DNA of 64,000 nt from Zygnema circumcarinatum SAG 698-1b (Eukaryota; Plantae; Zygnematophyceae), in assembly GCA_037447605.1 (NCBI GenBank), contig CM074804.1, forward strand, positions 7,231,909 to 7,295,908, in the 5' to 3' direction. Under the pieces are notes generated by a model. It saw only the letters and a list, made by a program, of their open reading frames with translations. It had not been told where the DNA came from and did no database searches. The position numbers were made by a program, and so were the translations under genes. Below, piece after piece: positions 4,961 through 49,615 of the stretch (within the stretch, counting starts at the first letter, position 1; each line of letters begins with the position of its first letter).

Positions 4961-6132
4961 AGTTCTGCGACAGTGGAGGTGGCGCAGAGGGAGAGAGAGA
5001 GAAAGAGAGTGAGAGAGAGGGAGAGAGAGAGGGAGAGAGAGAAAAAGAGAGGATGAGACAGGAGAGAGGGGGACGCAGGGCTCATGCAAAGCGAGGGTTC
5101 AGAGCGTCCGTACGATGCCACGTGGAAAGCAGACAGAACCAGCGCGATATTCTTGTAGGGAATGAGAGTTCGCCACGTGGCAAACAAAATTGGCGTTCAA
5201 AATAAAAGCGGCCAATGGGAGCGGAGCAAGGGATCCGCCGAGGCCGCGTCCGTACAGGGCACGGGGGAAGCGTACGGCGCCAATGGTTGGCTGACAGCAG
5301 ACCTCGACAAATAAGGGAATTCCCTTAATAATGTATGTAAACGTTTTTTAAGGCAAGATATTTGAGATTTTTCTATGGGATTTTAAGGGATATGTGAGCA
5401 AGGATCTCTTAGCCCCCACTGCCCTTGCCCCCCCTGCCTGCCCTTGCCCTTTTTGCCCCTGCCCCCACATTTTCTCTAATTAATTCAATCGCTTTCATGC
5501 ATATGTCCATTTAACTCTAAAGCAAAGGATGAAAGAATCACAAGGTAAAAATGCAGAAAAGAAAAAATATATGAAACCTTTTAGATATTCTAGGACATGC
5601 TCATCCAAGGACTGCAAGAAAGCACCAGCTTCAATCAGTCACCTGCAATGAAGTGAAGCACCAACGTACAAGCTATACTTATATGACCTTTTTGTTCAAC
5701 TAAGAGCACACCCCAATCGCTTAATATCAATCTAAACTGACACTACCACCAAACTTCGGATCTCCGACAACCCTTGATTCGTCCCTTAACAAAACTATAT
5801 ACGGGACAGACAATAATCTTTTTATGGGATTTAAAGGATTTCGTACAGAGATTCCCTTAATTGTAGACGCCTGGCTAACAGTTCAGCAAGTGTACGGTAA
5901 ATGGGGAAATGGTTTACGGCACGCGTACGGATGGTTCGAAGACGGACGGACGGACGGATGGTTGTACTTTTTAACTGACGTAGAATTTTGCAGGCGAACG
6001 GACGTTCAAAGAGTGAGGATTTTAGGGTTTGAGAGGGAGAAGGTATGCGAGGTGAAAGGAGAACTGAAGGCCAGTCTGCGCTCTGTTTGCGGTGCAGGAA
6101 ACAGGTAAAAGGCAGCATTTCGTTCCTTGAGG

Positions 6133-9933: not shown

Positions 9934-10981
9934 GCAGGACGATTTATTTCAAATCCTTAACATATCTTCTTAGAAACTTGCAGACCAGGACTCCAAGATA
10001 CCTCTACCGTTTCCAAGCATTTCCTGAATATAAAAAAAGCTCCTGTTGGTTGGCAGCATGGAGCTAAGGCACCGTACCGGAATCCGCCCCCTCCATGATG
10101 CAAGACTTTCTGCTCCTTCGCAAACTTCTCGTTCCAAGACCTCCCTTCCTCCTGCTCCTTCCAAGACCTTCCAAGCCCTCTCCTCCTCTTCCAGTTCCAG
10201 CAGGCGGCGCACTGGGCCCATTCAGCAGGCGGCGGCGCCTTTTGAGGCCGCCGCGAGGCCCTCCCTGCAGGGCGCCCCGAGACCCTGCCACGTGGCGCCA
10301 GGACGGGGCTCCACCGCGACCAAGCTCGGAGGCGTCCACCACGTGGCGGGCGCAGGTGCCAGGAGGCCACGTGGCAGCAACCGCTCGTCCCACGTGTCCG
10401 CACCTCTCCGGCCGCGTCCGTACAGCAGCGGGTCCTTTTCAGCACGATCCATTTTGGACGGCAGCGGGAAAATATCCGTACTTAACGTACAAACGCAGCC
10501 CACGTGTGCCATGTGGCGGGCGACCGCCACGCTGTATGGAGATGGGTCGCCAAGCGCCGTCCGATCTGCCACGGCCCGAGAAAGCAAAGCTGCAGGGATT
10601 CAGAATGGCACACGTGGCGGGCATGCACTTGACGAAGGGAGTTTTTCTAAAAACAGTGCAAAAGCTACCTGGCAAGGCGCAGGGCCTCTCCCGTGTCACC
10701 ACGTGTTGAAAAGTCCGTACCGTACGGCGCAATCTCCCTCTGCCCCTCTCTATTCTTTTGATGAATTGTTAGCAATACAAGGAAATGCTATTTACACACC
10801 TCTTTGTCTAGATATACTCCTTTTTTGTCTAGATACACAGCTTTCATCGCCGGTCAGATTTTATTGCAGGGTTTTCAGGGTTTTAGGTCTATAGACAAAA
10901 GAGGTGCGTAAATACTAATTCTCAAAATATAAATGAGAAAAAGAAAATCAAAATTATGCATATGTATGTTATACAGACTAA

Positions 10982-11416
10982 GGGTCAGTTTCCATCAGCC
11001 CGTTTCGTAACGAGCTCATTACGGTCCACGTAGGACGCCGTTTTGCAGATAAAAAGACGAGTTCCATCAAAACGCCGTTTCCAATCAGCGATCGCCACGT
11101 GCACGATTTGCAGCGTCCGCCGTGGCCCACTGCGGTTACCGTACGCGCGTCGCTGCCGACAGTTTTTTAGGGTTTGCAGGAGGTTTCCAGCCAACGTGGC
11201 AGTCGCACGCTGGCGTATCTTTGGTAGCCACGTGGCGGCACGCGAATGGTCGTAATGGCGTTACACCCCCTTCTTCGGACCGTCCTGGGGAACGGTGCCT
11301 CGTTACCACGTGGCAGCCACGTCGACGCCACGTTGGTGGAAACGGCCTGATGGAACCCATGGGTCGTCGTCCATTACGACGCCACGTCGGAATAACGGGC
11401 TGATGGAAACTGACCC
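10982..11416. mobile_element. PIF/Harbinger (Tourist-like) MITE A, 435 bp
   Basis: Perfect 23-bp TIR GGGTCAGTTTCCATCAGCCCGTT (10982-11004 and 11394-11416). TAA on both sides (10979-10981, 11417-11419). No coding capacity. Confidence 0.9.
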
Positions 11417-39719: not shown

Positions 39720-42673
<2,954 letters not shown>

Positions 42674-44881: not shown

Positions 44882-47800
44882 ATGACTACCGTAGGGTCGT
44901 ATGCGTCGCCGGTTGAGCAGCGGAAGGTGGGCGGCATGGCAGGGAGTAAGAGTAGCAGTGGCGGCTGTTGTGTGAACGGCGTGTGTAGCTCGGCAAGTAA
45001 GAGCCCGCCTGCCCCTGTGAAAGCGCCCACCAATCCGGTGGGTATATCCAATGTTAGCTCAGCTAACAATGGCGACTGTTGCGTGAATGGTGTTTGTAGC
45101 TCGCCAAGTAAGAGTCCTCCAGGTCCTGCCCGAGCTCCCATGAAGCCGGCAGCTAGCAATGGTGGCTGTTGTGCGAATGGTGTTTGCAGCTCAGCAAACA
45201 TGAGCTCCCCTACACCTGCACGAGCTCCTACTAAGCCGGCCAGCGTGGCTGGCAGTGGTGGTTGTTGCGCAAACGGCGTTTGTAGCACGCCAAGCAAGAG
45301 CCCTCCAGTGCGGACTCCCAGCACCCCAGCCGGAAGTGGTTGCTGTTCAGGTGGAGTGTGCAGCGCTGGAAGCAAGAGTTCAGGACATACTGTCGTGGAC
45401 GATTCAGCCGAGCTGAAGAAGGCGCTCCTCAGCTTGAACGCAGACGAGGTGAAAGACGCAGGGAACGCGTATTACAAAAAGGGGAAGTTTGCAGAAGCCT
45501 TGCAACTCTATGACCGGGCCATATTTTTGTCTCCCGATAAAGCTCCTTATCGAGCAAACCGAGCAGCTGCGCTTGCCGGTCTTGGAAGGTTACAGGAAGC
45601 TATAACCGAATGCCAGCAGGCTGTAAACATTGATTTGAGTTACACCCGTGCACACCAGCGACTGGTAGGGCTTTACATGAGAATAGGGCGGTTCGACGAA
45701 GCTCGAATGAAAATAAAGTTTGCTCCAGAGGGGGAGCTAAAGGACGAGGCGATCAAAATTGACCGTGTTGAGGGACTTGTGGTGAAGGCCGAAGAGGCGT
45801 GTAAAGTGGCGGATTGGGAGGCGGTCCTCAGAGAGTCAGACGCGGTTATCGCCCTCGGCGTCGACTCTGATCCAAAGGTAATTCGGCTTGTGAATGGTGT
45901 GCTGATTTTGAGAACATACACTAAACGCTTTTTTCGAATTTTTCATTCCTTATCTTCCATCATTAGCATAGCGTTGACGGTGATTCAGCTCATGCATGTC
46001 CAAGAGATTGAATCAGGAAGATCTGGATGAAACTAATTCAACTTCCTCTTGCTGGACTCTCAAGTTTGACCTCAAACAATGGCACCGGTCTATTGAAGGA
46101 ATGCGGTCGGTCGCTTCCCATCAAGCATAGTGTCCATTTGACGAGGTCTCCTGCAACTGTACGTTCTCAGATCATGGCGGCAACTAATTTGACTTTGAAT
46201 ATCACTCATGTTTCTCCAGGTTTGGTGCTGGAAAGCAGAGGCGCTTGTAAATTTACACAAATTGGACGAGGCAGACGCAGCGCTGCAGGCAGGACTCCTT
46301 TGCCTCCAGGGAAGTGAGGATGCTGGAAGGTTTGGTCCAGAGCAGGGAAGCTTGCGGTTCTTGCGAGCAAAGGTTGATCTTGCTTTGGGAAGGTAAGTCA
46401 ACAGCTCATGAATTCTGCACTTTCACATGAACCTAGAACTAATAAAATGTAGATCGTTTGGCAGGGCGCTGTAGAGAAGAATCCTTCAAATAAAGTGTTT
46501 TCCTGATACATCCATCCAAACTCATATTGTATCGTCGCATGGAATCACTCCTTTTTTTCTCCTTTCTTTCATTTGTTTGATTAAGCGCTATTGTTGAACT
46601 TTTTAACCCACTCATTGACGTTTAATGCTTTGGCGTGCTTGATGCACTGTGCTTGAAGATTTTAGCTTCTATGGCTCCTCGTTGTCTTTGATTTAACAAG
46701 GCAGTTCATTGGCCTTCTGTGGATGATGATGACATTCTTCTGAAGCATTATGCTGTTACCCTTGGAAAACTTAGGTGTTGAATTTTGTCAATCAGAAGTT
46801 TGTCACAGCTCATGTGCAAGTCCTGTGGCAGGTTCGAATCATCGATTGCAACAGCGGAAGCTGCTCTTAAATTGGATCCAGACAATGCGGAGCTTGTCTC
46901 GATAGTTAAGAAGGCTCGTGCTCTTGGCCGTGCAAGGAACAAGGGGAACGAACTTTTCAAGGCGGGGGATTTTAAAGGAGCAGCGGCAGCTTATGGAGAC
47001 GGCTTGGAAGCCGACTCGACCAATGCAGTCCTGTTGTGCAACCGGGCAGCATGTTTTTCGAAGCTCACAAAATGGGACGATTCGCTGAAAGACTGTAATG
47101 CAGCACTGAAGAGTCATCCACATTATCCAAAGGCGTTACTTCGACGAGCCTATTGTTATACCAAGGTGAGCACTAGCTCTTGGGTACGGTGAACCTCGGG
47201 TTAGTATTCTTTTTGGCGGCAAAGTGCAAAATGTTGGCCGCTTACTTTGAGTGGGATTTCGGGACAGATGAGCAAGTGGTCAGAAGCAGTGCGGGAGTAC
47301 GAGCTGCTTCAGAAGGAGCTGCCCAACGATCCAGAAATTGTTAGACTTCTTACTGAAGCTCGAGCAGGCCTGCATAAGAGCACTACGAATGATGACCCCT
47401 CAGCACCAAGAAGCAGTGTTGCAGAGGGTGGGCAGGTTGTCGAAGTCATGAGCATTGAGCAGTTTCAGGAGGCAGTGAACTCTTCAGGTGAGACCGGGTT
47501 GGTTTTTCCTCGTTGACAGTCTCCGTCAGTCATAAAGCTGGCGGAGGAGCTCTAAGATGATTCTGCATAACTTGAGGGAAATGTCATGGCAGTTGGTGGT
47601 GGTGCACGTTCTTGTCTTCAAACGTCTGCTAACGAAAGAGCCCTTCACATGCTGGCAGGAGCGGTGGTGGTGGATTTTTCTGCGAGCTGGTGCGGTCCCT
47701 GCCGGCAGATTGCGCCTCTTGTGACGAAGTTGTGCAAGCAGTTCAAAGGAGCGAAGTTCCTTCAGGTGAGTCAATGTTGTATAAAGGGTGACTGCTCCCA

Positions 47801-48055
47801 CTAAGTTTCTTTAACACCTTTTGTTTTCCATCATGTTCCATCATCTTTTTGATTCGAAGAAATTGTACATGAACTTTTTGGCAGGTTGACATCGACAAGA
47901 ACCGTGAATTAGCTACAAGAGAGGGAATTCAGTCTGTTCCGACATTCAAAATATACAAGAATGGGAAGAAAGTGAAGGAGATTTTGGGGGCAAACGCGTC
48001 GGAGCTTGAATCGTCTGTTCAGCAGCATTGCAAGGCTCTTCGTGTCGAGTTTTAG
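44882..48055 (+). CDS. TTL: TETRATRICOPEPTIDE THIOREDOXIN-LIKE (TTL) protein
   Basis: Exons 44882-45877, 46220-46392, 46832-47165, 47268-47487, 47659-47765 and 47885-48055. TPR motifs [38 protein letters not shown] and [38 protein letters not shown] are followed by a C-terminal thioredoxin fold [32 protein letters not shown]. This is the TTL architecture. Confidence 0.92.
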
Positions 48056-49020: not shown

Positions 49021-49615
49021 CCCTTTCCACATCCACCATCGCAGTGTGAATTTATCCAGTCCCTGTCTCAGCATCAGCATCAGCATCAGCATCAGCATCG
49101 CAGCACGGTTCCTTGCCACAGCTTCAGTCTCTCAGTGCAGTTCCAGGCAGTCCCTCCCTCGGCGCGAATCAGCGCGGGCCCCGCTTCCCGGCCCCGCCTC
49201 CTCGCCCTCGCCGCTGATTGGCTCCCGCGCCTCGTGTCCGCCTCTCACCCAGTCAGCACACGCCACGTGCCTACCTGGCCCCACCTCGATACTTCCCAAC
49301 GAGTGGCGCTGCGGCGGCGCCACGTGGCGCCCTCCGCTTTGCGGGCAGGCGCGACCCGCAGCGCCACGTCGCGCTGCGCCGTTTGCGTGACGCGCAGGCC
49401 GCCACGTCACTTCCGCCCCCCCCCCCCCACCTATTTTTAGGGCCTGGCCGGGCCTTTGTTCCCTTTCCCCTCCCCTCCGGATCCAGACCGCCCTGGCCGG
49501 AAAAGTCGACGCTTATCCTCTGCCATCCGCTTCCCTACTCCCGGCTCTGCGTTGCGCGAGGAGGGAAGGAGGGAGGGAGGGAGGGAGGGAGGGAGGGAGG
49601 GAGGCTGCAGGTGCC

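Follow-up and report, generated by a model that had tools for sequence, protein, structure and literature searches.

A probable TTL-lineage TPR-thioredoxin gene with an intact WCGPC active site in a streptophyte alga

The TTL proteins of land plants consist of a disordered N-terminus, 3+3 TPRs, a long linker and a C-terminal thioredoxin (Trx) fold. Experiments in Arabidopsis have given them roles in brassinosteroid signalling, in cellulose-synthase scaffolding (Kesten 2022) and in salt and osmotic stress, and the thioredoxin-like (TRXL) domain of Arabidopsis TTL3 was reported to matter for protein stability and not for catalysis. The family is defined by a TRXL domain without the catalytic Cys pair (Rosado 2006, Lakhssassi 2012, Kesten 2022). 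The literature, including Lakhssassi 2012 (PMC3291270) as quoted by citing papers, describes TTLs as land-plant-specific and absent from algae. Kesten 2022 places their origin in embryophytes and presents it as an adaptation to life on land. The PSI-BLAST search described there found chlorophyte TPR + TRX proteins that keep the catalytic Cys; among charophytes only Chara braunii gave matches, and no protein with an intrinsically disordered region, TPRs and a TRXL domain was found. Here we describe a gene from a stretch of 64,000 nucleotides of Zygnema circumcarinatum SAG 698-1b (GCA_037447605.1, contig CM074804.1, positions 7,231,909 to 7,295,908 of the forward strand). The whole stretch is called the window, and all positions below refer to it.

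The protein encoded by this gene has the parts of a land-plant TTL in the same order, but its thioredoxin domain carries a complete WCGPC motif. We therefore describe it as a TPR-thioredoxin of the TTL lineage and of ancestor type. Strictly, the name TTL does not apply to it because the published definition demands an inactive TRXL domain. Judging from sequence, we consider it highly likely that this is an expressed streptophyte-algal gene of the TTL lineage which represents the state before the thioredoxin was inactivated, and we infer that the protein works as a tethered reductase. The coding region is made of six exons:

44882-48055, plus strand: whole coding region of the TTL-lineage TPR-thioredoxin gene, 6 exons, 2001 nt, 666 amino acids
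44882-45877, plus strand: exon 1, low-complexity N-terminus (amino acids 1-175) followed by the first TPR triad (amino acids ~185-300), from Pfam and composition
46220-46392, plus strand: exon 2, helical linker joining the TPR triads, from the gene model and spliced contigs
46832-47165, plus strand: exon 3, second TPR triad with carboxylate-clamp-type residues R425, N429, N460, K490 and R494, from Pfam and PDB matches
47268-47487, plus strand: exon 4, end of the TPR region, spacer and start of the thioredoxin domain, from the gene model and spliced contigs
47659-47765, plus strand: exon 5, thioredoxin active-site exon of 107 nt, from translation and Pfam
47885-48055, plus strand: exon 6, C-terminal half of the thioredoxin fold with the cis-Pro loop and the stop codon, from Pfam and PDB matches

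The gene is real and transcribed, because assembled contigs of four sequencing runs from four studies skip exactly the five introns. All five introns are of the GT..AG type. One transcript contig spans all five junctions and joins the six exons, and together the contigs reach from ~44629 to past 48300. Contigs covering the exons have a depth of several hundred, while intron-retaining pieces are 10-50 times shallower. An in-frame stop lies 21 codons upstream of the ATG. Exon 5 is bordered by the acceptor AG/GAG and the donor CAG/GTGAGT. It is read in the plus-strand frame that begins at 47661, and the alternative two frames are closed or meaningless. These borders agree to the base with those given in the initial annotation of the window, which was made from the sequence alone.

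The active site W585-C586-G587-P588-C589 is encoded by codons 47688-47702 on the plus strand, within exon 5. The same exon encodes D580 (codon 47673-47675), the equivalent of the buried Asp, and exon 6 encodes the cis-Pro loop S-V-P629-T (P629 codon 47939-47941). The 35 residues of exon 5 alone matched the Pfam Thioredoxin family PF00085 with E=6e-11 (42.7 bits, cut-off 23.5), and exon 6 matched the C-terminal half of the same family with E=5e-9 (36.4 bits, cut-off 23.5), values that rule out a chance match. The hallmarks of a classical thioredoxin, namely the buried Asp, WCGPC and the cis-Pro loop, were thus all found in the C-terminal ~105 residues, and the domain is predicted to be apparently functional. 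The absence of the catalytic Cys pair, which is part of the TTL definition, does not hold for this protein. The initial annotation had proposed that the exon at 47659-47765 carries an intact WCGPC site, and the translation, the spliced contigs and the Pfam match all bear this out.

We searched for relatives by querying exon 1 exhaustively with HMMER against 1.84 billion cluster representatives, and then ran a local BLASTP in which the complete spliced protein was the query. The best full-length matches were land-plant TTLs (41-46% identity over ~480-540 residues, 390-440 bits). Each of them aligned to the window protein in a single, collinear alignment from TPR1 to the Trx C-terminus. Those named among the best matches were Selaginella 'TPR repeat-containing thioredoxin TTL1', Amborella 'TTL1' and Brassica rapa 'TTL4'. 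According to cluster look-ups, the matches included bryophytes (Sphagnum, Marchantia), lycophytes (Selaginella, Diphasiastrum), ferns (Adiantum, Ceratopteris, Psilotum), the gymnosperm Welwitschia, and angiosperms (Amborella, Brassica rapa and others). In the exhaustive search the window's own protein was not among the representatives, where the top identity was 51-53% and was reached by fragments only.

Algal relatives came from further searches. Four proteins of Closterium (Zygnematophyceae), unnamed in NCBI and unannotated in the databases (P0052, P0151-P0153), came from a profile word search. The Closterium proteins share with the window protein the 3+3 TPRs, a Trx domain with AWCGPC and six exons with the same phases, but they are only ~38% identical to it overall, have Ala for the buried Asp, a shorter N-terminus and at most one CC motif. 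Precisely where exons 4 and 5 meet, P0052 (Closterium NIES-65) and P0153 (NIES-64) have 18 additional residues, AFLDSRAMLLCSSATFAG, which P0151 and P0152 do not have. The probable cause is a splice site that was mis-called in the deposited annotation. Starting from a 250-amino-acid fragment with 51% identity and CC repeats of a similar kind, we reached a 9-kb Logan contig from run SRR9302961 (L001), which encodes a complete ortholog of 567 amino acids that is 45-46% identical overall to the window protein. The word-based searches were dominated by TPR words and recovered few algal relatives, and we draw no inference from them on whether others exist.

A more distant group consists of compact TPR-thioredoxins of 370-400 amino acids (the P0158 family) from Tara and other aquatic metagenomes, which scored 151 bits against the window protein. 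They are encoded by single-ORF genes on gene-dense, intron-poor, eukaryote-like contigs. They resemble the window protein in two TPR triads, a canonical Trx domain and a near-identical active-site stretch, but they do not have the N-terminal low-complexity region, and they cover just 13-26 of the ~120 linker columns. They are probably the chlorophyte TPR + TRX proteins of Kesten 2022.

We then compared the active-site residues across 47 aligned rows. The 33 land-plant rows were made of 29 from the best 150 cluster representatives and four from the word search. WCGPC was present in 13/13 non-embryophyte rows: the window protein, L001, both Closterium rows and nine compact TPR-Trx rows. In contrast, CxxC was found in none of the 33 sampled land-plant rows. 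Mapped on the tree, the loss of WCGPC is a single change between these two sets of rows. Marchantia has RWSQRC, Sphagnum RWSDRC or RWSEGC, and Selaginella RWSERC or RWSDRC. The fern state is mostly [RK]WS[ED]RC. Among seed plants we found KSNEQC in Welwitschia, KSDERC in Amborella and SSSNRQS in Brassica TTL4, as well as deletions in several eudicots. No sampled land plant has kept the nucleophilic Cys, while most non-angiosperms still have the resolving one; the site reads W-S-x-x-C in bryophytes, lycophytes and ferns and has no Cys in many angiosperms. The window protein, L001 and the compact family have retained the buried Asp. Closterium has Ala at this position, and in land plants it is occupied by Q, L, H, E or Y.

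These results agree with the statement of the initial annotation that Arabidopsis TTL1-4 do not have the catalytic dithiol, and the literature holds the same view of land-plant TTLs. Its remark that the family has been described as land-plant-specific is confirmed by the cited papers. The results also support its proposal that WCGPC may be the ancestral state, later lost. Three lineages of streptophyte algae have the motif, as does the outgroup clade of TPR-Trx proteins, and one change on the tree accounts for its distribution.

The motif could also have returned secondarily, by gene conversion or exon replacement from an h-type thioredoxin gene. The nearest PDB structures to exon 6 are indeed eukaryotic cytosolic and h-type thioredoxins, and the active-site stretch of the window protein resembles plant h-type thioredoxins. 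Nevertheless, several regains would be needed in place of one loss. The active-site exon keeps the length of 107 nt and the phases that are invariant in the family, and the remainder of the domain has TTL-type signatures. The Trx domain of the window protein is 46-49% identical to bryophyte TRXL domains and 36-41% identical to the canonical Trx domains of the marine family. This greater similarity to the bryophyte domains speaks against a recent replacement by an ordinary thioredoxin, and we find a secondary regain very improbable.

It is likewise unlikely that the domain is non-catalytic despite its intact motif and has only a structural or stabilising function, such as the TRXL domain is reported to have in Arabidopsis TTL3. 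The importance of the Arabidopsis domain for stability and the loss of the buried Asp in Closterium speak for such a function. On the other hand, WCGPC, the Asp and the cis-Pro were all kept in both the window protein and L001, even though the two are just 45-46% identical overall. The presence of WCGPC in all 13 non-embryophyte rows is the pattern expected from purifying selection on catalysis.

Exact exon chains were derived from the genomic loci of Marchantia (P0028), Closterium (P0152) and Brassica rapa TTL4 (P0041), and the introns were mapped onto the alignment. The five introns of the window gene occupy identical columns and have identical phases (0, 2, 0, 1, 0) in the genes of L001, Closterium, Marchantia and Brassica. 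In all five genes compared, the active-site exon measures 107 nt, and the phase-1 intron after exon 4 is common to all compared TTL genes. Marchantia and Brassica rapa (L003, L005) have one extra phase-2 intron at the equivalent of window residue 267 (~45680), which is absent from the three algae. This intron is a candidate for a second change on the embryophyte stem, beside the loss of the Cys.

A maximum-likelihood tree was computed under the model LG+C20+F+G4, with ultrafast bootstrap (UFboot) and SH-like approximate likelihood ratio test (SH-aLRT) values as support. The Carpediemonas TPR protein P0258 and P0240 were dropped as long branches after the first tree. In the resulting tree Closterium, the pair of window protein and L001, and the land plants were grouped together (SH-aLRT 91, UFboot 53), and the window protein lay outside the embryophyte clade. 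The compact TPR-thioredoxins (97/93), the window protein with L001 (92/98) and the land plants (82/100) each formed a clade. The initial annotation had called the gene a TTL ortholog and had proposed a tree with TTL, TDX and DNAJC7/TPR2. The relationship to TTLs stood, based on the best full-length matches, the five shared introns and this grouping, for which the approximately unbiased (AU) test was not decisive. Of the proposed tree, the part with the TTLs was obtained; TDX and true DNAJC7 were not included, and the sole outgroup was the TPR-DnaJ protein P0256.

The tree bears on the possibility that the gene comes from another and older group of active TPR-thioredoxins, either compact chlorophyte/marine or TDX-like. 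It would then be just a paralog or sister of TTLs, and TTLs would have arisen separately in embryophytes, as Kesten 2022 concluded. WCGPC and a nearly identical active-site stretch (beginning V[LV]VDF[TS]) are common to the window protein and the marine family, the AU test does not reject a clade of the window protein, L001 and the compact marine proteins (p=0.27), and the bootstrap value of the streptophyte group is only 53. The remaining evidence points the other way. The Marchantia and Brassica TTL genes have all five introns, and the 107-nt exon, in common with the window gene. The low-complexity N-terminus and the ~120-residue linker are present in the window protein and lacking in the compact marine proteins. 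The window protein scores ~400-440 bits against TTLs and 151 bits against the marine proteins, its Trx domain is closer to bryophyte TRXL, and Pfam finds neither a HIP-type N-terminal domain nor a J domain in it. Moreover, the chlorophyte ortholog of TTL may be this very marine family, in which case a separate family would merge with the TTL lineage. We consider a separate origin quite unlikely.

Several points nevertheless weigh against placing the gene in the TTL lineage at a stage before inactivation. The node that joins the algal genes to the land-plant TTLs is the one with the low UFboot value. The AU tests reject neither a different rooting, with Closterium as sister to land plants (p=0.33; this constraint is uninformative about membership), nor the clade with the marine family mentioned above. 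The lone TPR-DnaJ outgroup is very long-branched, with TDX and true DNAJC7 outside the tree. The Ala of Closterium at the buried-Asp position means that not all catalytic features are conserved across the algae. The sample of 33 land-plant rows is not exhaustive for TTLs with CxxC, and orthologs from Klebsormidium, Chara, Zygnema and Mesotaenium were not recovered in the word searches, which were saturated with TPR matches. The gene structure, expression, domains, motif and comparative pattern are direct results, and catalysis and chaperone binding are predicted from sequence. In the sequence phylogeny alone the deep rooting is weak. The N-terminal low-complexity region, the full linker and the similarity of the Trx domain to bryophyte TRXL favour the placement in the TTL lineage.

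AtTDX is a fusion of a TPR module with an active WCGPC thioredoxin, for which an interaction with Hsp70 has been proposed. It is ~380 amino acids long and has a HIP-like N-terminal domain and three TPRs only. The window protein differs from this architecture in its six TPRs, its long linker and the absence of a HIP-type match in Pfam. Membership in the TDX family was rejected, as Pfam found two TPR triads and no non-TPR domain in exon 1. The statement of the initial annotation that the TPRs are of the TTL type and not of the HIP type holds on the same grounds. Proteins of the DNAJC7/TPR2 type share a homologous multi-TPR region with the window protein, and the TPR-DnaJ protein P0256 aligns over 111 of the ~120 linker columns. 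However, these proteins have a C-terminal J domain, and the identity in the TPR regions is only 23-34%. This family was rejected too, since there was no DnaJ match in Pfam and the C-terminus is a thioredoxin domain.

In the window protein the TPR triads are positioned at amino acids ~185-300 and ~421-540 with a helical linker of ~120 residues between them. Pfam TPR_1, TPR_2 and TPR_11 matched amino acids 190-250 in exon 1, and exon 3 matched TPR_1 with E=3e-11. The six TPRs, in the order 3+3 with the linker, are collinear with those of known TTLs, and both triads are 37-55% identical per region. The linker aligns over ~119 columns with all streptophyte TTL-type rows. The best PDB matches of exon 3 are TPR domains that bind Hsp70/Hsp90 (SPAG1, RPAP3, STIP1/Sti1, SGTA). 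Putative clamp residues were found with the expected spacing in triad 1 (K191/N195/N226/R256/R260) and triad 2 (R425/N429/N460/K490/R494); the positions were assigned by analogy with the K/N/N/K/R clamp of Hop TPR1. By this analogy, both modules are predicted to be of the carboxylate-clamp type that binds Hsp70/Hsp90 peptides. For TTLs, a function as carboxylate-clamp co-chaperones was predicted by Prasad 2010, as reported in a citing paper.

If so, the TPR modules would dock the protein onto its partners, either the C-termini of Hsp70/Hsp90 or other clients. The tethered thioredoxin would then reduce disulfides or other oxidised thiols in the bound partner and would be recycled by a cellular thioredoxin reductase. 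On the land-plant stem the replacement of the nucleophilic Cys (WCGPC to W-S-x-x-C) and the loss of the buried Asp would have converted the domain into a pseudo-enzyme, the TRXL, and the land-plant TTL would have become a pure scaffold.

Beside the change itself, we observed that bryophytes, lycophytes and ferns still have the resolving Cys, in the form W-S-x-R-C, and that a lone Cys is found in Welwitschia, Amborella and some eudicots (for example alignment rows P0028, P0019, P0012, P0017, P0026 and P0037). The literature commonly says merely that the Cys of TTLs are 'lacking'. The single conserved Cys of land-plant TTLs may still have a role.

The N-terminus of the window protein is another region in which it differs from land-plant TTLs. 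Amino acids 1-175 consist of 67% S/P/A/G/T/N and 3% I/L/M/F/W/Y and contain 15 Cys. The Pfam scan gave no domain match for amino acids 1-185. By its composition and the absent Pfam match, this region has the N-terminal disorder included in the TTL definition. The Cys residues form a repeated motif:

44960-45364, plus strand: five CCxxGVCS repeats, with CC at amino acids 29, 66, 96, 128 and 154, by direct reading

Two similar repeats are present in L001, and Closterium NIES-68 has one CC. No CCxxGVCS repeats were found in the sampled land-plant TTLs, among which Lithospermum has a single CC standing alone. Several angiosperm TTLs also have a GCG near residue 10. The repeats may speculatively be sites of S-acylation or lipidation, metal binding or redox reactions.

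All of these observations could be joined in one scenario, which is possible but which we hold only tentatively. TTL would have begun in streptophyte algae as a client-tethered active thioredoxin and become a pseudo-enzyme exactly at the origin of land plants, through the exchange of Cys for Ser, the loss of the Asp and the gain of the intron. The retained resolving Cys would then serve in redox sensing or substrate trapping, and CCxxGVCS would be a membrane anchor or a redox substrate. Since the resolving Cys was kept for hundreds of millions of years, a redox-sensing or substrate-trapping intermediate is suggested rather than simple decay.

In the literature on TTL and streptophyte algae we found no description of algal TTL orthologs. 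Active-type TPR-TRX proteins in green algae are already known from the supplementary analysis of Kesten 2022. What appears to be undescribed is a streptophyte-algal gene with the whole TTL architecture, the TTL gene structure and an intact WCGPC. The TTL family thus apparently predates land plants and became a dead enzyme around the move onto land. The full architecture, with the disordered N-terminus, six TPRs and a thioredoxin domain with the complete catalytic site, would already have existed in streptophyte algae; therefore the change at terrestrialisation would be the inactivation of an enzyme and not the birth of a gene. This would correct the dating of the family, against the published view that TTL orthologs begin in embryophytes, and would place the loss of catalysis on the embryophyte stem. 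It also offers a testable case of the conversion of an enzyme into a pseudo-enzyme at a major evolutionary transition. Natural active/inactive pairs become available for complementation tests and redox assays, and one may ask which thiol substrates the ancestral protein served. For specialists this is a useful correction and an experimental handle, not a shock. The surprise is modest because chlorophyte TPR + TRX proteins with the Cys pair had been noted in that supplementary analysis.

Some observations concern the relatives. An ENA metagenome scaffold of 2484 nt (L002) carries a partial gene whose two TPR triads show 53-56% identity to those of the window protein, a closer match than any named genome gives; the Trx part lies off the scaffold. 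The environmental sample therefore contains an alga closely related to that of the window. The neighbourhood of the compact TPR-thioredoxins is conserved in four contigs (L006-L009) and includes genes for a DegP-type protease, gyrase A, a DnaJ protein, UDP-galactopyranose mutase and an ATG17-like protein. These contigs are intron-poor, eukaryote-like and up to 1 Mb long. We suspect that the source is an abundant marine picoeukaryote, possibly a prasinophyte or another picoplanktonic green alga.

Other observations concern the surroundings of the gene in the window. Immediately upstream, on the same strand, a gene for a class III alcohol dehydrogenase of the S-nitrosoglutathione reductase (GSNOR) type ends (...VVIHM*) at ~42000-42672. 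Its adjacency to a thiol-redox gene is probably coincidental. The heptamer GCCACGT, which resembles a G-box or abscisic acid-responsive element, occurs 31 times in the window against 5.2 expected, and 0/100 shuffles reached 31. It is clustered at 49262-49407, 10287-11387 and 5117-5181, in GC-rich, apparently intergenic or promoter sequence, and one of these clusters lies just downstream of the TTL-lineage gene. Also downstream of this gene is a (CAGCAT)n microsatellite of five units at 49075-49104.

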